Source of the DNA: Pelomyxa schiedti
Taxonomy: Eukaryota; Protista; Evosea
Length of the DNA stretch: 64,000 nucleotides
Assembly (NCBI GenBank): GCA_020536535.1
Contig: JAHLWZ010000861.1
Span: 1-64,000 of the forward strand
Direction: 5' to 3'
This document shows positions 8,900 to 18,379 of the stretch, one piece after another. Below the pieces are notes generated by a model. It had not been told where the DNA came from and did no database searches. It was given only the letters and a program-made list of their open reading frames with translations. A program made the position numbers and the translations under genes. The stretch's first letter is position 1. Every line of letters starts with the position of its first letter.

Positions 8900-11800
8900 T
8901 TAGCTTTTGGCAGCGTCGGCAGCTTTCTTAGCGGCTGCGGCTTTCCTTTCTTCGTCCCTCTTCCTCCTCTCTTCCTTCTTTTGATCCAGTGGAGGTAATG
9001 GCGCCGGTGGCCCCCTGTTGCGATACAGAATCACGGCAATGGATACAAAGAGATGAAGCCCAGTCCACAGTACCGCGAACCCGATGGAGAATATGTAATC
9101 CACAATCACGGACTAGTATGTATGAGGGAGGGAAATGTTGGTTAATCAATTGATAAGCGGAATGTTTGGTGGCTTGGGATTTTTTTGGAAAGAATTACCG
9201 CTGCTGGGAGGGAATCATCTGTCACGTTTGTGTATGATATCCCGAGTTCTAGAACGGCTGAGATGCAGTGACCGACAATGAGGCCAAATGTGACCAGGAA
9301 AGCGGCCAGTAAGTACAAATCCATGTATGTGAGATACTGTGTGCAGAGTTAACGGTTCTAAAGATATTCTCCATCCCCAATACAAAGGTGTTACCTGTGT
9401 CTTGCAAACTGTCACACCGGTGGAGAACCTTTTCCCAGTTACAACACAAATATAAAAGATAGAGATATCAAACATACTTGAAGAATACAACAGCGGCAAC
9501 AATGGCTGCAGAAGCTTCAAATCGGCTGAAAATGGAACTTGCCTCCTTCTCAACAAACACAACAAATCCGGCTCTATTAATGCATTCAGCCCAATGAATA
9601 TCCACAAAAAAAAAAAAAAAAAAAAGAAAGGGAGAAAAAGGGAAAGGCGCTATAACATACGCAACGATGCAAAACATTGGAACGAGGCAATTCCAAATGT
9701 AGTATGCCGTCTTTCTTTGGGCTGTTATCTTGTGGAGGGTGAGAAGTGACTAAACGAATTGAAAAAGAGACCTGAATTCCTTCCACATATTGTGACGGAG
9801 AATAAAATATTGTTGAATGGTAAACATCCCAATCCTCACATTCAGGGGTCGCTGAAGGATGCGTTTTGGTGCCGAATGATTGGTAATCTTGCGTACACCC
9901 ATCATCGATGGGGTTGAGGCGTTCGAATTTTGGGGTAAAGGCCGTAGTAGATAAAGGCCACCTGGAAGTTGGGTGAGGTTTGCGTGAGAATATGAAAACA
10001 TATACAGAGCCATTTCAAATTGGTGTTTATCGAGAGGGAAATGTTGAAGTTGCAGTACTTTGCTGAATTCCCCTTGTGCTTTCCATTTGTACTTCACCAG
10101 TGGGTTATGGTTGTCATTATTCCTTTTATCTTTTTTTAGGGTTTGTTGCTTTTCAATCTCTGTATCACGAGCGTCAATAGTCACTGAGTGGTAAATGACA
10201 CTGAAAGAATCTTGCGAGGATAAATTTTGGAATGTAAGTGGGGGTAGCCAGACAGTCTCTGGAACAACAGTCCACTCTGTTATGTTTTTGTCTTTGGGCA
10301 TGTTTATCTCGTGTTGTGACTGCCAACTCATCCTCATAGAGACAGTCACTTGGAACTGGGATGTGTCAGAAACTTTCAAGTTTTTTATGTGCGCACTTTA
10401 TTGTAAGATTCATCCACCTCCATCAGTTTAACTTTCAACTGTTCAACAGTGATCTTTATCTGCTGGTAATCATCCTGGTGAACTCTCGAACTGGTCTGTG
10501 TTGCTGCCACTATTGTCTTAATGCGATTGGCATCACCATATTTAATGGGCGAATCTGATTCAAATTGCAAATCAGTAAGGTCATCAATTTCCATGGTTTT
10601 TACAGCATTTTCAGTTATCTACAACGATTTAGAAGAATACAATATCCGTGGGATATACTTTGTTTTCTCGACAAGCTTTCACCACACTAGGATGAAATTG
10701 GCACATTGCCAACATCTGACAGAAATCTTCAACTTCCTTACCCAGGGTATGATTTCGAAGTTGAGTGAATAGAATGGTTTGCTCCTCACCACTCAGGTCC
10801 ATTTTATTCTCACTTGCAGCGTACTTTTTCCCAGGACTGTAATATATTCTCAGTAACTGGCATAAATGGCGTAAAACATACATCCAGATATAGGTTTCAA
10901 TTTGCTTGTCAAAAAGTTTCCGTGTGGTCATAGCCGCGAAACTTTTGAGGGTCTGAAGAGTAGTTAATCTTATTGCATATCATACGGGTGTGTACCAGTT
11001 TTTCGCAGTGTGCAACTATTTTCTCTGCAATCTTTTTCTGCACAGGATCCATTATGTTCAGCACGGTCTCCAAGCCTTCCTCACGCTCCCTTGCGGTCAA
11101 TGGAGTACCCCTTGCAGTCATGGGTGAGGAAGTGGCAGGTGCCATCACAGGAGTCCCAGCAGCGGCAGCATTGGAACTAACAACAATACTCGTACTACTA
11201 CTAGTCATCTTCGCAGTATCAACTTCCCCCGCCGTGCCAATGGCACAGCTTCCAGAAAGTGGGGAAGCCCTAGGAGTGGTACCAGATTTTACAGAAGCGG
11301 CCGTCAGACTAGGCACCCTACTACTACTGCTGCTGCTAGTAGCGGGAACAGCAGCAGCAGCAGCAGCGGCGGTAGTAGTATTAGTAGCAGCATGAGCATC
11401 AGTACGAGACTGTGTAGCACCACTCCCACCGCCACCACCACCACCACCGCTAACAACAACCACAACGGCCGCATCCGTGCCAGTCCCCCCCTCGCCGCCG
11501 CCGCCGCCGCCACCACCACCACATGACGACGACGATGACGACGGCGACGCCAGCTTGGTCACTGGTGCACTCTGCGGCACGTCCTCCTCGTCCTCGTCCT
11601 CGTCCTTGTCTTTGGCATTGACACGCCCATCGAGCACCTTGGGCGCACCCTGGCTCCTTCTATTACCCCCGCTGCTCCCGCTGCTGTTGCTCTTGCCGCC
11701 GCCGCCGCCGCTGCTGCTGCTCGCGGAGCGCGGGGATGAGGAGGCCGAGGAGGAGGGGTGGTGGTGGTGGTGGTGGCCGCTGCGCCGCCGCCTCGGAGGA

Positions 11801-11949
11801 GGCCTAGCCACAACACCCGCCGTTGTCGCCGCGGTGGTTGCTGCTGCTGCTGCTGCAACATTTTGCTGGTGGTCTGGGCCGTCCCTGTTGTCGCTACCAC
11901 TTTCTTCGTCGTCCGTTTTGGTCGCGCGCGCCGCTTCGTCGTCCGACAT
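8900..11949 (-). CDS. Cys-less (Pro-loop) pentameric ligand-gated ion channel-like protein with N-terminal low-complexity region, helical repeat and SAM-like domain (copy 1)
   Basis: WLPPLTFQN (WxPxxxxxN), LQHFPLDKHQF (Pro-loop FPxD), pre-M1 RKTAYYIWNCLVPMF, M2 SRFEASAAIVAAVVFFK, YLTYMDLYLL into M3, and a hydrophobic M4 DYIFSIGFAVLWTGLHLF. Confidence 0.8.
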
Positions 11950-12093
11950 CGTGGGATGTATTTTGTTTTTCAGTTTTTTCTCTGATTGATTGATTCAAAC
12001 TTACAAGACTGGGTGGGTAGTAGGTAGGGGGATTCAGTCCCGCGTAACTTACAGTGGTGTGTATGTGGTGTGTGGTTGTGTGTTTTGTGTTGT

Positions 12094-15030
12094 TCAGGAG
12101 GTGCTGCTGTTCTGTGGATTGATCATGGTGATGGGGCGGTGACGGCATGATGAGCAGGGGCATGTGTGCATGCAGATAGGACACCCTGTGGTAGGCATCG
12201 CAGTGGCGCCTTGTATTATCCCTAGGCACTTCTTGCAGAACTGTGCGGGGGTTAGTGTAAATGTAAACGGAAAGGTAAGTAGGTTGCGGTGACCTTGTGA
12301 TTGTTGTCATTGGGGCATAGCAGGCACAGTGGCTGTTTGGATCCACACCTGTTGTGTTGCAGGTGGAATGTAAGCCTAATTTGTTTGGAAAAGCAAGGCC
12401 TACTTGTGGCAGTGACAGCACAAGGAGCTCTTTTGTTGTGGGATAACCTTGTCAATGTTTTGACTTTGGTTCCAAAACTCTGAACAGGGTGTAACACTGA
12501 AGATAACTTCATTGTGGTCAAGGAACTCACTGAGCTGAGTGTCCAAAGTACAGTTCAGAGATTCTGCTGCAGCAAAGACCGAAACTACAGGAATATGAAT
12601 CCTCTCAGGGGAAAACAGAAGCCTTTGAACTTGTGTAATGAAATCAGAGACTGTCATTTTAGGGGTGACAGGAACTTGCACTACAGGTAGAAGTGCACTG
12701 TCAGAGTGTACTGTTACCATCTTCACAGCCTCAGTAATGGCTGTGGCAGTAAGCTCAACTGGTTTCACTGTTGTCTCTTGCAGGATGTGTGTGGTATCTT
12801 TGCTATTCGAGGAGGTGTCCGCGGCTACTGTTGGTGCAGCATTGACCTCGTTTTCCAGAAGTGGCTTGTTTTGTTCTTTACATGGTGTATCAGTTGTCAA
12901 TGTTGGTGGTTGTTGAGGAACGGTAGGAACACTTCGTTGTGGCTGTGAGTGCAATTGAGGCGTGGGTGGCATCGATAAGGGTGTTTCTGCTTGTGCTTGT
13001 GCTTGTGTCTGCTTCTGTGCTTGCACTTGTGGTTGTGCTTGCTTTTGTGGTTCCAGTTCCGGTTGTGGCTGTGGCTGTGGCTGTGTGCGTGGCTGGGGTT
13101 GGGGCTGTGGCTGGAGCTGTGCCTGTGGTTGGGGCTGGGGGTGTGCCTGTGGTTGGGGTTGGGGTTGTGCTTGCGCTTGTACATCAAGTTGTACTTGCTT
13201 TGTGTCAAGTAGTGCCTGTAGTTTCTGGTTCAATTGCACCTGTTGGCTATGTTCGGATTGCTGTTTGTTCTGTACCTGCTGCTGGTGCTGGTGTGGATGC
13301 TGGCGGCGGCGTTTGTGCGGATGCTGATGCCACTCCCACTTCTGCTGTTGCTGCTGCTGTTCTTGCTGTTGCTGCTGTTGTTGCTGCTGTTGTTGTTGCT
13401 GTTGCAAGTTGAAGTTCTGCTGTGCCATTTGGTCTGGTGTTTGTGGGGGGATTTGTTGCCTTTGCCGCAGAGATTCCATCCACATCTGGGTCTGTCGTTG
13501 CCTTTTCTGCAACTCCTCATCTTGTTCCTGCCGAGTTTTCAAACTAGCTTGGCGTTGTTTTTGCCAGTCTCGAAACCGTTGGTCCTGCTGTTGTTTATGT
13601 TGCAGCTGCAGTTGCTGCAGTAGTTGTAGTTGTTGTAGTTGTTGCTGCTGTTGCTGCAGAACAGGCTGCATCCGTTCTTGTTCCCTGCTGTAACTCCACT
13701 GCCAATTTGGTGTGTTCATGCCTGCATTTAACAGGGTCTGCTGATTGTACTGTTGTTGAGGAGTGTTGATATTTAGCATGGCAGGCTGCTGGCTTGGTAC
13801 AGCTGTGGGTACCCACCCTGTTGGTTGTTGTGCTGGATACCCAGACTGTGTTGGTGCCTTTGGTCTTCTATAAGCATCAGGTGTTTGCTGAAGCTGAGGG
13901 GGCACTGGAGAGTTGAACTGTTGTTGAACCTGAGGCTGGAGCTGCGATTGGGGAGGGGCACCGAGCAGTGATTGCTGTGCGTGAAGCTGGGGCTGTTGTG
14001 ATGCAACTTGTGGTCTGTTTTCTACTACTTGTGGTGGAGATTCCACATGGGGTATTTTTTGCTGCCGTGATGCTGGTGGCGTTTTGGGCTGCATTATTTG
14101 CGGCTGTTGGCTTGGTGTTAGAGGAGGCAGGGTGAGAGGGGGGAGTCCTTGGAGAAGTGGGTTTCGGTGAGTCAGATCAGAAACGCACCCGGTTAGTCCA
14201 CCCTGCTGTGTCCCTTGCGCTGCTGAGGTTTGCGTTTGTTGTTGCTGTTGAGGTAGCTGCATGGGCCCGTGTACCTGCGCACCGGAAAGAACAACAGGGG
14301 TACCTGCTTGTAGATGTTGCTGCTGCTGCTGTTGCTGCACCAATGAATTGTCCTGGTCCGGATACTGCATGTGTTGTTGTAGGGCGGGGGCGGCATCATT
14401 AGCAGCAGCGGTGGCCGCCCGCACTCCAGCTCCCGGCTGCTGCTGCTGCTGCTCGTTTGCTTTTCCATGTGATCCGTCGCCGCCGCCCGGCAGCAGTGGT
14501 GGTGGTGGCGCCTGTGCCACTCCCTCACCCTCGCTCGTTCCCCCCTCGCCCTCTCGTGTCTTGTTGGCCGGCGGGGGCACGGGGTGCGAGGGAGCGCCCT
14601 GCACCCCTGTGCTTGTGCTTGTGCTTGTGCTTGTGCTTGTGCTTGTGCTTGTGCTTGTGCTTGTGCTTGTGCTTGTGCTTGTGCTTGTGCTTGTGCTTGT
14701 GCTTGTGCTTGTGCTTGTGCTTGTGCTTGTGGGTGTTGGTGCGGGGTCGTCGTGCACTAGCCGCAGGGCCGTGGGTGGTTGCGGTGGGTGGTGGTGGTCC
14801 TGGTGGTCGCGATCTTGGGGTGGGGCGGCGCCCTCGTCGACGTAGACGGTGGCAGCGCCCTCTTCGTCGTCGCCGTCGTCGGCGGGGACTAGGATGTACT
14901 CTGTGGGCACTTCGTCTTCAACAAAGATGATTTCCGTGTCAGATGTCTCGGGCTCCCCTCCGTCGTCCATGCTTTTGTTGCTGTTGTTGGCAGGGCGTGT
15001 GCTCCCGCCATCAGCGTCTTCGTCGCCCAT
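12094..15030 (-). CDS. Q/P/T-rich protein with a ubiquitin-like domain and a C-terminal zf-4CXXC_R1-type zinc finger
   Basis: An 876-aa ORF plus two spliced exons giving CCHCHKCGSKQPLCLLC...FCKKCL...CPICMHTCPCSSCR. The segment at about 12530-12730 has a beta-grasp-like pattern. Confidence 0.7.
14609..14728 (+). repeat. Perfect (GTGCTT)n hexamer microsatellite, about 20 units, encoding a (Thr-Ser)n tract on the minus strand
   Basis: Seen directly in the sequence. Confidence 0.95.
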
Positions 15031-15099
15031 GGTTTTTTTTTTTCACCAAAATTTTTATCGGAATGAAATTTTTTTGGTATGATCGAAAAGCTGATGAAC

Positions 15100-18000
15100 T
15101 TAATGCAGTTTGAGACCGTAGTTGCGCAGGGTGACAATAATTGTGCTTGACTTGGCCGCCAGCCCGCCAGACGTGGATTTGTCCAAGTCAGGCTTATGGG
15201 CAACCAAACTTGGCTCTGGGGGTCCTGCCCGGCCATACATGAATATCACAATCACGATGAAAATATGCAGTCCAATCCACAGGGTCGCCATTCCTATGGA
15301 GAATATGTAATCCACTGTGACTGCCTGTAGTATGTATCATTAGTAGTTGAATCGGCGGTACTGTTTATATACTGCGGGATTATAGGGAGGCAAATACCGA
15401 TGCCGGGAGGGAATCGTTAAGTTGGTCAGGATGTGCGAGATCAAGTACACATGATATGCTGTGTCCAATAATGAGGCCAAATGTGACCAGGAACGCGGCC
15501 AGAAGGTACAAGTCCATGTACGTTAGGTACTGCACAAAGCAAGAGTAAGAACTCAAGTTAATTGTGTGTGTTACCTGTGTCTTGCAAACTGTCACACCGG
15601 TGGAGAACCTTTTTGTTGTGTGAGGAACAACTTACAACTTTACAACATACTTGAAGAATACAACAGCGGCGACAATGGCCGCTGAAGCTTCAAATCGGCT
15701 GAAAATGGAGCTTGCCTCCTTCTCAACGAACACAACAAATCCGGCCCTGTTTAGTAATTCAACTCCTGAGTGGGAGAAGTAAAAGGCATACGCAACGATG
15801 CAAAACATTGGTGCAAGGCAATTCCAAATGTAATATGTGGTCTTTCTTTGGGCTGATATCTTGCGATAGGTGAGAAGTTTGCCATTTCAAGGAGGAAGAC
15901 CTGGATGGTGGAAACATAATTTTTGGGATAGAATAGCGTCTTTGGGTGAACATCCCAGTCCTCACAATCACCCTTAGCTGCTGGCCTGACAATTTGACCA
16001 AACTTCTCGACTTTTTCCTTTGGAACAAATTTTGGGGTATATTGGGTTGTTACTTGAGGCCACCTGAGTTTTAAGTTAAATTCCCTCTGGGACTTGGTAA
16101 TGGAAAACACACAGAGTCATTTCAAACTTGTGGGTATCGAGTGGGAATTTGTGAAGTTTTAGTATCTCGCAGAATTCTCCATGTGCTTTCCAGCGATATA
16201 TAACGTATGGATTTTTGTTGTCGGTATTTTTACTTGGTATTTTTTTTTGATCCTCTGTAGCGGTTTCGTATGGAACAATAGTCACGGAGTGGCATATAAC
16301 ACTGAAAGAATCTGGTGAGGATAGATCATGAAAAGAAAGTGGTGGTAGCCAGACATAATCTGGAACCACTTCACTTCGTGTATTGACGTTTGCAGTGATT
16401 GGAAGATCAGTCATTGATTTCCAAGTCATCCTCATAGAGACAGTTGCTTGGAACTATTTTTCTGTTGCCATATACTATGGCAGGAGGTGTGGGCAGATAC
16501 CTTGTTGTAAGATTCATCTACTGCCATCAATTTTACATTCACCTTTTCTGCTCTGATGAAAACCTCGTTTTCTTCCTTAAGTTTTTTTGGAGTCTGTATT
16601 GCTCCCACCATCGCCTTGATGCGGCTGGCATCACCATAAGTTATATATGTGCTGGTACCAAGTTTCAGGCCAGTAAGATCACCAACTTCCATTGTTTTTA
16701 CAGAACGTTCTGTTATCTGTTTCTTTTAGGGAAATAACCTAAGAGACATATTACCTTGTTTGCTCTACAAGTATCAATTACGGACTTGTGAAATTTACTT
16801 TTCTCCAAATCTATGCAGAAGCGCGTCACCTCGACTTCCAATACATATCTTCGAAGCTGTGAAAATAATAGAGTACCCTCATCAAGAGTCAAGTTCAAGG
16901 CTGCTCCCAAATGGGTGCTAATTTGAGTATCAAAACCTTTCCGACTTTCCATGAGTTCGAATTTTTCAAAAGCCTTTTTTTTTAGTTTCAATATATTCAA
17001 CGGGAAAATGAGCACACAATTTTCTGTTTTGAGTGCAACATCTTGACTGCAATATTGTCTTGGGTGGGATCACTTCTGTCAAGCACTTTTACTAAGCCCG
17101 TGGAGTAGCTTTGTAGTTGCGAAACTACTATCTTTTGTTCTTCCACTGTCAAATTCAACGTTCTGCTGATTATTAGGTCACTATGGCGAAATTAAGTAAC
17201 ATTCTCCAAACGACGTTTTACTTCATCACATTGGTTCTGCGTACTAATTTCCAGGTCCTGAGAATACGCTGTTACTTGCCAAATTGCAAACTGCGTCATT
17301 AAGCGCACCATTAACTCTTTAGAGTCAGCTATCTTGATAGCAATATCTTGGTGCACAGGATCACATCTATCAAGCACGCACTCCAACCCACAGGCAGCTC
17401 CAATCCTACCTAAAACGCAATATCTAAGTGCTTCCAGGACAAGTTTGTAAACCCCACCCACCAACCCACCCCAGCCCCGCGCCACTATAGCAGCAGTAGT
17501 AGTAATAACAAGGCCGTACCAGCAGCCACCGCCTTGTCGTTAGCATTGCGGGTATTCGTGCCCACATCACCAGGACTGGCCTCCTCGGATATAACGGTAC
17601 GAGGGTGAGGTGGTTTGATTGATGCAGCAGCAGCAGCGGCAGCAGCAGCAGAGGTAGTACTAGTACTAGTAGTGGTGGTGGAGGTGGTGGTTTTAGTTTG
17701 GGTTTTGGTGGTGGTTGTGGTGGATGCATGTGACCCTGGCATGTCGACGTGCAGGTGGTTGGTGTTTGCACATTCCATTACTGGTTGTTCCTGCGGGTGC
17801 CTAGTGGTGGACTGTACCATTAGATGGTGACGATGATGCTGATGGTGGTGGGGGCGGTGGTGGTGGCGTTGGCGTTGGTCACCGCCAGTGGAACTGCCAC
17901 TGTCACTGACACTGACACTGACACCACCACCAGCAGCAGCAGCAGCAGGATCCCCTGTGGTGGTTGTGGTGGCTGCGGTAGCACCTGTTTGGGGGGCTGT

Positions 18001-18291
18001 GCCGGTTGTTTTAGACGCCACCGCCCGCGTGGCCGGGGACTGCGAGGGGGATTGGGATGCTGACGATGAGGACGATGATGATGACGACGAGGCGACGGTC
18101 GACGATGCAAGAGCAAGAGCAGGAGCAGGAGCGGGCGGAGGGTGCCTCGCCGAGGACGGCGATGACGATGATGGGACTGGCCTGCTGCGGGGCCGTGCTC
18201 GTCTATTGTACTGGCTGCTCCGCCTCATCATCTTGCCCGTGGTCGTTGTCGTGGTCTTTGGTACTGACTCGGAGGAGGAGGACGAATGCAT
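15100..18291 (-). CDS. Cys-less pentameric ligand-gated ion channel-like protein with two helical repeats and a SAM-like domain (copy 2; start codon uncertain)
   Basis: WLPPLSFHD, LHKFPLDTHKF, M1 YYIWNCLAPMF, M2 identical to copy 1, M4 DYIFSIGMATLWIGLHIF. Intron positions in the TM region match copy 1. Confidence 0.8.
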
Positions 18292-18379
18292 TGGAGACAG
18301 ACTTCTTTGTTGTCGGCAAAAACGGAACGGTGTTCCGCGAAGTTCAGTTTGGGCGATCAAACAAAGTCAGGGTTTCCTC

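Follow-up and report, generated by a model that had tools for sequence, protein, structure and literature searches.

Neighbouring genes of Pelomyxa schiedti encode predicted SAM-capped pentameric channel subunits whose ligand-binding side may face the cytosol

The window analysed here is a stretch of 64,000 nucleotides from the anaerobic amoeba Pelomyxa schiedti (contig JAHLWZ010000861.1, positions 1 to 64,000). Its minus strand carries two neighbouring genes, Pelo_12880 and Pelo_12882, which are public hypothetical proteins of this species and are called copy 1 (protein P0001) and copy 2 (protein P0002). The features of the two genes, including the ligand-binding domain (LBD) and the membrane helices M1 to M4, are as follows.

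8900..11949, minus strand: copy 1, Pelo_12880 (P0001), 837 aa; the public protein maps exactly
10996..11949, minus strand: copy 1 exon 1, a single open frame of 954 nt (318 codons)
10484..10733, minus strand: copy 1 SAM-like five-helix domain, residues 377-446, placed by alignment to P0002 residues 55-124
9717..10450, minus strand: copy 1 LBD, beta1-beta10, residues 458-659, placed by profile matches and alignment to copy 2
9026..9710, minus strand: copy 1 pore domain, M1-M4, placed by hydropathy and the exon map
9555-9710, minus strand: copy 1 M1, split by an 87-nt intron that holds a run of about 20 T
9422-9542, minus strand: copy 1 M2, which includes a 34-nt micro-exon at 9395-9428
9241-9327, minus strand: copy 1 M3, by hydropathy
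9220..9228, minus strand: copy 1 N-V-T sequon in the M3-M4 loop, residues 758-760, by hydropathy and coordinates
9026-9210, minus strand: copy 1 M4, by hydropathy
8903..9025, minus strand: copy 1 post-M4 tail, residues 797-837, 41 residues, 13 of them Lys/Arg and 7 Asp/Glu
17042..18360, minus strand: probable, unannotated 5' extension of copy 2
15100..17041, minus strand: copy 2, Pelo_12882 as annotated (P0002), 505 aa; exact match to the public protein
16588..16835, minus strand: copy 2 SAM-like domain, residues 55-124, from the predicted model against solved SAM domains
15845..16554, minus strand: copy 2 LBD, residues 136-326, from the ELIC match and Foldseek
15232..15841, minus strand: copy 2 pore domain, M1-M4, by hydropathy and alignment
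15410..15418, minus strand: copy 2 N-D-S sequon in the M3-M4 loop, residues 425-427, by hydropathy and coordinates
15103..15231, minus strand: copy 2 post-M4 tail, residues 463-505, 43 residues, 6 of them Lys/Arg and 3 Asp/Glu

Exon mapping divides copy 1 into 11 exons separated by GT-AG introns of 40-87 nt, with the stop codon at 8900-8902. The protein starts at window position 11949 with an acidic, hydrophilic N-terminus, from which exon 1 runs on into low-complexity sequence of Ala, Thr, Ser, Gly and His, without a signal peptide or membrane helix. Three short exons follow, and the introns between them are only 40-45 nt long. Copy 2 as annotated has 10 exons, introns of 38-73 nt and a stop codon at 15100-15102. 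Judging by the frames upstream, it probably extends 5' beyond the annotated 17041. The extension would include further copies of the helical unit found in front of the SAM domain (about 17020-17400), and also a 291-codon frame rich in Ser, Thr, Arg and His (17485-18360), which contains the tracts with which an earlier note on this DNA had begun copy 2. A run of eight Leu ends this frame and lies either within a possible 35-nt GT-AG intron or at the end of a separate frame. Both genes are under purifying selection, with dN/dS of 0.08-0.31 depending on the region (0.27 for the SAM region, 0.31 for the LBD and 0.076 for M1-M3).

At least six further paralogues with the same build are encoded in the Pelomyxa schiedti genome, here named C93, C1004, C1721, C998, C583 and C187. 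Sequence searches found no relatives outside this genome, and hence no orthologues for a conservation test, and no publication on these proteins was found.

In the predicted model of copy 2, a SAM-fold domain directly precedes the LBD. The region forms a five-helix bundle of about 65-70 residues, with a pLDDT of 80-90 in the second predicted model of P0002. Residues 55-127 of the model match solved SAM domains with Z scores in a range of about 7-8, which is by itself not decisive for small helical domains: tankyrase-1 (Z 8.0, rmsd 2.0 A, 63/63 residues), PHC3 (Z 7.5, 2.2 A, 65/70) and DGK-delta (Z 7.1, 2.1 A). BICC1, Scm/Sfmbt, SARM1 and Ste50 are also matched, with more than 10 other SAM entries beyond the top three. 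SAM family models give only sub-threshold matches, in the paralogues (SAM_3 at E 0.005, SAM_1 and SAM_2 at E about 0.2), and a profile of the C-terminal half retrieves the SAM domains of EphA7 and Sfmbt at E 1-2. The SAM region is split by a phase-0 intron (10619-10658 in copy 1), which is found at the same place in six genes, namely both copies, C583, C998, C1004 and C93.

By sequence and predicted fold, both proteins are Cys-less (Pro-loop) pentameric ligand-gated channel subunits, very divergent relatives of the neurotransmitter-receptor channels. A single chain carries a beta-sandwich LBD and, after it, four membrane helices, and M1 to M3 are 95% identical in protein sequence between the copies. 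The LBD of copy 1 has a Cys-less F-P-L-D Pro-loop and the pre-M1 Arg. No Cys pair flanks this loop to make a strict Cys-loop, and a single LBD Cys is common to both copies. The copy 1 LBD matches Pfam PF02931 at E 3.6e-5 with 23.7 bits, below the cut-off of 26, and copy 1 matches GLIC at E 0.006. The full-length proteins match neither of the Pfam family models PF02931 and PF02932, and a genome-wide search with both models returned nothing above the gathering cut-off. This shortfall is compensated by a significant match to solved members of the family and by the fold. HMMER against solved structures matches residues 237-407 of P0002 to ELIC at E 4.5e-8, and the alignment places F-P-x-D, the pre-M1 Arg and the M1 Pro on their ELIC equivalents; these elements are kept in paralogue fragments. 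The second model of copy 2 has, as a whole, a pLDDT of 64.9, which is of medium confidence. A Foldseek search with the copy 2 model retrieved GLIC, ELIC and GlyR at E values between 5e-11 and 1e-9. Pentameric channels account for all of the PDB entries listed, as well as for at least 500 matches at E <= 0.001, and the target-normalised TM-scores are 0.44-0.59 over 338-388 columns.

The earlier note had reported that neither protein has a recognisable signal peptide, and both hydropathy and the frames upstream agree. Signal peptides were judged by a 19-residue scan, Hessa-scale sums and Kyte-Doolittle 12-mers. In P0001, membrane-grade segments are confined to residues 666-795, where Hessa-scale sums range from -0.4 to +2.5, and the Ala/Thr/Gly-rich stretches N-terminal of these residues score +5 to +9. 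Each copy has only four hydrophobic helices, all of them C-terminal, and hydropathy gives neither a signal peptide nor a membrane helix ahead of M1 in either copy. The frames upstream of copy 1 were checked for a missed signal-like stretch, and nothing of the kind was found in any frame of the about 450-470 nt between its ATG and the stop codon of the preceding gene, where the best Kyte-Doolittle 12-mer is 1.18. For copy 2, the annotated start and the extended start are both non-hydrophobic. The paralogue C998 is read in one 411-codon frame from a hydrophilic start through the SAM domain to beta1, and what looks in C1721 like a hydrophobic read-through is in fact a GT-AG intron rich in T. The N-terminal signal peptide that is a hallmark of pentameric channels, or any anchor before the LBD, is thus found by hydropathy in 0/8 family proteins (both copies and six paralogues). 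Because the same absence is seen in every paralogue examined, the missing signal is more than chance.

The most likely reading is that the LBD faces the cytosol, as the earlier note had proposed, although partly on other grounds. We consider it probable that the sensor side is cytosolic and the topology inverted, and only slightly less so that Pelomyxa has a family of upside-down, SAM-capped pentameric channels opened by an intracellular signal. Each chain would run from a disordered N-terminus through a helical region, the SAM domain and the LBD into the pore, whose four helices have a minimal M3-M4 loop, and end in a basic tail. The 330-660 residues before the pore, comprising disordered sequence, SAM fold and LBD, hold no signal or upstream membrane helix, so that this whole N-terminal part would be made, and presumably folded, in the cytosol before M1 exits the ribosome. 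M1 would then insert with its N-side in the cytosol. The SAM domain, the LBD, the M2-M3 loop and the C-tail would be cytosolic, and the M1-M2 turn and the M3-M4 loop would be outer or luminal. Either a cytosolic ligand or protein contacts made through the SAM domain would open the pore, and ions would be conducted across the plasma membrane or an endomembrane. Such a topology would be the mirror image of every described family member.

The tail of C187 also points to the cytosol. It consists of five Lys, Gly, three Lys, Pro, Cys-Phe-Ile-Cys and the stop codon, a polybasic CaaX box as predicted from sequence. Within the family this box is found only in C187, a distant paralogue; neither window gene ends in the CaaX pattern of Cys, two aliphatic residues, X and the stop. 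A CaaX box is a cytosolic lipidation signal, and prenyltransferase alpha-subunit repeats are encoded in the Pelomyxa schiedti genome. In the pentameric-channel fold the C-terminus lies on the LBD side. Given that the CaaX tail of C187 makes sense only in the cytosol, both the tail and the LBD side would be cytosolic.

Two further lines of evidence had been drawn from charges and sequons. The post-M4 tail of copy 1 is indeed long and Lys/Arg-rich, and Lys+Arg residues, counted by hand, number 7 on the LBD side against 1 on the opposite side in copy 1, and 6 against 1 in copy 2. The bias is weak in paralogues (7 vs 4, 5 vs 3 and 6 vs 5), and the charges flanking M1 in C583 favour the usual orientation. 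The charge argument is strong for the window pair and weak in the paralogues. The N-V-T and N-D-S sequons are present in the M3-M4 loops as described, but as evidence of topology they fail, being no more than chance. About 0.08 sequons are expected by chance per loop, the two lie three alignment columns apart, and the five paralogues whose loops were read have none in the M3-M4 loop. This loop is about 10 residues long by predicted helix ends (copy 2) and about 20 between hydrophobic cores (both copies). From work of Nilsson and von Heijne in 1993, oligosaccharyltransferase is said to need an acceptor Asn farther from the membrane than here; in a loop so short, the Asn is nearer the membrane than the enzyme normally accepts. 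In short, the proposal of a cytosolic LBD loses the sequons, and the charges beyond the pair, and gains the signal-less build of at least six paralogues and the CaaX tail, and it has better support than the earlier note could show.

With the usual topology, the LBD would be outside or luminal, and either the signal has gone unseen, because a 5' exon was missed, a different start is used or Archamoebae have an unusual targeting signal, or translocation follows synthesis. To our knowledge, all characterised pentameric ligand-gated channels, from those of bacteria to those of human synapses, have an extracytoplasmic LBD. We nevertheless consider this orientation unlikely for the Pelomyxa proteins. 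The 5' end of copy 2 is uncertain, but copy 1 and C998 have continuous frames without a hydrophobic segment, and introns of 38-87 nt in the two mapped genes, together with a preceding gene about 450 nt upstream, leave little room for a hidden exon. The Ser/Thr/Ala-rich N-terminal region might pass as a mucin-like external stalk, and the C583 charges fit. The copy 1 LBD holds two sequons, but these are not conserved, and the copy 2 LBD has none. The absence of a signal extends to all eight family proteins, the CaaX tail of C187 would be senseless outside the cytosol, and we know of no signal-less translocation of 330-660 residues that include folded domains.

It is less probable still, and in our view distinctly so, that the fold was kept in proteins that are not ligand-gated channels, such as SAM-linked membrane scaffolds or constitutive leak pores, for which orientation would have no sensory meaning. 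The extreme divergence, the failure of the Pfam models at curated cut-offs and the unusual Arg, Glu and Lys residues of M2 would suit such proteins, but the coupling elements (F-P-x-D Pro-loop, pre-M1 Arg and M1 Pro) are retained, and constraint is very strong on M1-M3 and also present on the LBD. Finally, it is very improbable that the low-complexity and SAM regions are a separate upstream gene and that the channel begins at an internal Met, given that, although P0002 is annotated without the upstream region and has an internal Met immediately ahead of the final SAM helix, the exons are joined in frame by 38-47-nt introns, the six genes that share the phase-0 SAM intron all continue directly to beta1, and a channel begun at the internal Met would still be without a signal peptide.

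The inverted orientation favoured here is unreported for the pentameric ligand-gated channel family. If it is true, a natural family with its sensor inside would show that the fold can work either way round, and the Pelomyxa proteins would be a new class of intracellularly gated channels, the first in a superfamily thought to sense only extracytoplasmic ligands. They would also offer structural biologists a SAM-capped variant for studying the control of gating by an apical domain.

Among known systems, ELIC from Dickeya and GLIC from Gloeobacter are the best sequence and structure matches of the Pelomyxa proteins, with ELIC the best in sequence and with structure matches to copy 2 at E 4.6e-11 (GLIC, 8i41) and E 1.1e-10 (ELIC, 8twv); the structural alignments have only 12-17% identity. 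Like ELIC and GLIC, the Pelomyxa pair has no Cys-loop disulfide, keeps the F-P-x-D motif together with the pre-M1 Arg and the M1 Pro, and connects M3 to M4 by a very short loop. A signal peptide directs the export of ELIC and GLIC, and their LBD is periplasmic. Unlike the Pelomyxa proteins, they lack a SAM domain, a long N-terminal region and a long basic tail. The polybasic CaaX anchor of the K-Ras4B type is likewise Lys-rich and followed by Cys-aliphatic-aliphatic-X and a stop, but in C187 it is borne by a polytopic channel rather than by a small GTPase. DeCLIC (6v4a), a weak match at E 8e-4, shares with the Pelomyxa proteins an accessory domain fused directly before the LBD. In DeCLIC the extra domains are beta-rich lobes that lie in the periplasm and follow a signal peptide (PMC9897478, PMC12664993), whereas the Pelomyxa cap is predicted to be a SAM helical bundle without a signal.

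Cys-less pentameric channels of unicellular eukaryotes were inventoried in 2016 by Jaiteh, Taly and Henin (PMC4795631). Like those channels, the Pelomyxa proteins are eukaryotic Pro-loop receptors that lack the Cys-loop. The inventory includes no amoeba, to judge by the absence of the word stem 'amoeb', does not mention signal peptides and has nothing on reversed orientation or added domains, and none of its members is close enough to appear in sequence searches. The present work records the family in Amoebozoa, from which the inventory had no member. In CNG/HCN channels and in IP3 and ryanodine receptors, a cytosolic domain binds the opener, as is proposed for Pelomyxa. This is a functional analogy only; their folds and ancestry are unrelated to those of the Pelomyxa pair.

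When the ligand-binding exon of copy 1 is compared with 1.84 billion proteins by HMMER, only two matches are returned, and these are the products of the two window genes, deposited as the hypothetical proteins Pelo_12880 (837 aa; copy 1, P0001) and Pelo_12882 (505 aa; copy 2, P0002) of the anaerobic amoeba Pelomyxa schiedti. Both proteins correspond exactly to minus-strand sequence of the window, with GT-AG introns of 38-87 nt:

11949-8903, minus strand: copy 1 gene, 11 exons, public protein mapped to the window
17041-15103, minus strand: copy 2 gene as annotated, 10 exons, public protein mapped to the window

Gene prediction for the published genome (52.4 Mb in 5337 scaffolds) used Augustus, PASA and EVM with transcriptome data (PMC8887013). 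The first exon of copy 1 is one open frame of 318 codons, and the protein start is acidic and hydrophilic. The public model of Pelo_12882 begins midway in a repeated helical unit and is probably truncated at its 5' end; more copies of the unit are present upstream of it on the same strand, as is a low-complexity frame of 291 codons (17020-18360). Between the channel genes, also on the same strand (12400-15030), is an 876-codon Gln-rich frame with Gln runs, (Thr-Ser)n and (Gln-Pro)n, for which there is no Pfam match of note.

Neither full-length protein matches a curated Pfam model, the frame of the ligand-binding domain (LBD) reaches 23.7 bits for the curated model PF02931 against a cut-off of 26, and a genome-wide search with channel family models returned nothing above cut-off. 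Residues 237-407 of P0002 match the channel ELIC with an E value of 4.5e-8, and the alignment takes in the F-P-x-D loop, the Arg before M1, the Pro of M1 and the beginning of M3. In a protein-language-model atlas, the nearest neighbours of P0002 (score 0.86) are clusters in which the two Pfam channel families occur. With two sequences aligned, structure prediction gave a poor first model (pLDDT 37), and a second model, built with fragments of five paralogues as additional rows, had a pLDDT of 64.9; paralogues entered both searches and models as ORF or exon fragments, not as full-length proteins. By Foldseek against the PDB, all of the matches listed, among at least 500 at E <= 0.001, are pentameric channels, with GLIC (E 4.6e-11) and ELIC (1.1e-10) best, followed by glycine and GABA-A receptors. 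There is no disulfide pair around the beta6-beta7 loop, and the proteins are therefore classed with the Cys-less Pro-loop receptors.

Both genes are under purifying selection, with dN/dS of 0.27 in the helical and SAM part, 0.31 in the LBD and 0.076 in M1-M3, computed on joined exons that were checked to reproduce the public proteins. The M1-M3 segments of the two copies (9478-9728; 15651-15859) are 95% identical in protein, with dS at 0.45 there and above 1.2 elsewhere in the genes, and the introns between their coding parts differ. Such a pattern, read from sequence, suggests past gene conversion, or else unusually strong constraint, perhaps co-assembly.

Six further members of the family are found in the same genome, named here for their contigs: C93, C1004, C1721, C998, C583 and C187. 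Each has the same order of parts, in which a hydrophilic start is followed by His/Thr/Ser/Gly/Asp low complexity, a SAM-like region, an LBD whose loop is of the R-F-P-L-D-R-Q type, four helices of which M3 and M4 are joined by a short loop, and a tail bearing a common Trp-containing motif. Five loci in this genome with Pfam PCMT domains were also read, and no channel-like sequence is present at any of them. A phase-0 intron occupies one common position in the SAM region of both window genes and of C583, C998, C1004 and C93. In C1004, C1721, C998, C583 and C93, the motif in the tail after M4 reads basic-x-x-Trp-(Asn/Ser/Asp)-x-Leu-acidic, in place of which the window genes have Gly-Pro-Pro-x-Pro. 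Both copies encode the top of M2 and the beginning of the M2-M3 loop in a micro-exon of 34 nt (9395-9428; 15575-15608) that can also be recognised in C1004, C1721, C583 and C93; the intron that follows it in C583 is of the GC-AG type.

The earlier note proposed that the LBD of these channels faces the cytosol, the reverse of the usual topology, and began from the lack of a recognisable signal peptide in either copy. This is borne out by a hydropathy scan, the means by which signal peptides were assessed, and by the DNA upstream. Membrane-grade segments are confined to the last 170 residues of both proteins and correspond to M1-M4 (Hessa-scale sums of -1.6 to +2.5), and the Ala/Thr/Gly stretches upstream of M1 give sums of +5 to +9. 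Nothing signal-like occurs in the 470 nt that separate the copy 1 ATG from the stop codon of the gene before it, or in the 540 nt preceding copy 2's long Ser/Thr/Arg frame. In the paralogue C998, an uninterrupted frame of 411 codons opens at the start, crosses the SAM domain and reaches beta1, with no membrane segment. Three apparent hydrophobic segments were rejected: a Leu8 run upstream of copy 2, considered as a signal anchor, cannot be kept without running into a stop; in C1721, a long hydrophobic run proved to be a GT-AG intron rich in T; and the poly-Phe stretch within M1 of copy 1 is intronic too (9574-9660, 87 nt, with a run of about 20 T; 45 nt at the equivalent place in copy 2) and mimics a membrane segment when read in frame. 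In membrane-protein biogenesis, an N-terminal domain that is long and folded remains cytosolic when it carries no signal, and the first membrane helix inserts with its N-terminal side in. By these rules, the missing signal is a strong argument that the LBD side would be cytosolic.

The domain directly before the LBD probably has a SAM fold. As predicted, residues 55-127 of P0002, a part with a pLDDT of 80-90 in the second model, superpose on the SAM domain of tankyrase-1 with a Z score of 8.0 and an rmsd of 2.0 A over the whole 63-residue domain, and they also match the solved SAM domains of PHC3, DGK-delta, BICC1, Scm/Sfmbt, SARM1 and Ste50. Sequence-level similarity to SAM domains is below significance throughout, and for this reason the fold is called only probable; the two halves of the domain, aligned separately, have no significant PDB or Pfam match. 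Alignments that included SAM fragments misplaced by MAFFT were left out. A linker of about 10 residues, free of any hydrophobic segment, connects the SAM domain to beta1 of the LBD.

A distant paralogue, C187, provides independent evidence at the level of the family. After M4, and in the same exon, its tail ends with five Lys, Gly, three Lys, Pro and Cys-Phe-Ile-Cys before the stop, a polybasic CaaX box like that of K-Ras4B:

L032:1748-2002 (contig C187), minus strand: polybasic CaaX tail of C187, from frame reading

Prenylation is a cytosolic modification, and prenyltransferase alpha-subunit repeats are encoded at three loci in the genome. Given that the C-terminus of the pentameric-channel fold emerges on the LBD side of the membrane, the CaaX tail argues that this side is cytosolic. 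No other pentameric channel ending in this way is known to us.

The N-glycosylation sequons in the M3-M4 loop that the earlier note took as a sign of inverted topology are present as described (N-V-T at 9220-9228 in copy 1; N-D-S at 15410-15418 in copy 2) but fail as evidence for it. The loop comprises about 10 residues by the predicted helices of copy 2, or about 20 between the hydrophobic cores of either copy. Oligosaccharyltransferase, as Nilsson and von Heijne reportedly found in 1993, needs 12-14 residues from the membrane, and in so short a loop the sequon Asn is nearer than that. Moreover, the two sequons are offset from each other by three columns of the alignment, about 0.08 sequons per loop are expected by chance, and none occurs in the five paralogue loops that were read.

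The distribution of charge, to which the positive-inside rule had been applied, argues well for the window pair but weakly beyond it. The tail of copy 1 is indeed Lys/Arg-rich (13 Lys/Arg, 7 Asp/Glu), and that of copy 2 has 6 Lys/Arg and 3 Asp/Glu. Lys and Arg were counted by hand on the LBD side (pre-M1 stretch, M2-M3 segment and first 15 tail residues) versus the opposite side (M1-M2 turn and M3-M4 loop), giving 7 versus 1 in copy 1 and 6 versus 1 in copy 2, but 7 versus 4 in C1004, 5 versus 3 in C1721 and 6 versus 5 in C583. The charges on either side of M1 in C583 speak for the usual orientation. The proposal of a cytosolic LBD is thus supported in part, by the missing signal and the CaaX tail of C187 and not by the sequons, and we regard this orientation as rather likely.

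With a cytosolic LBD, the channel would be a pentamer in which five SAM domains sit atop the LBD ring, and it would be gated either by a small molecule in the cytosol or through contacts made by the SAM domains. Alignment with ELIC suggests a pore lined by Glu in position 2', Ala in positions 6' and 9', and Phe in positions 13' and 16'; the ring of Glu at 2' hints at a preference for cations. The narrow, charged end of the pore would face outwards or into a lumen, depending on whether the channel resides in the plasma membrane or in an organelle.

HMMER with the LBD exon returned no relatives outside P. schiedti, or any match beyond the two genes themselves, and none came from word-index searches with P0002, residues 330-800 of P0001 or the family alignment A6, or from the bacterial and archaeal genomes scanned, although these searches are weak below about 35% identity and did not return even the other Pelomyxa paralogues. 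A 2016 inventory of the superfamily by Jaiteh, Taly and Henin includes no amoeba, does not mention signal peptides and has nothing on reversed orientation (PMC4795631). A full-text search of the literature on the channel family together with inverted topology or a SAM domain found nothing relevant. The closest known proteins to the two window channels are ELIC and GLIC. Among the members whose structure has been studied, DeCLIC alone has an additional N-terminal domain, and in DeCLIC that domain is periplasmic, whereas the SAM domain of the Pelomyxa channels would lie in the cytosol.
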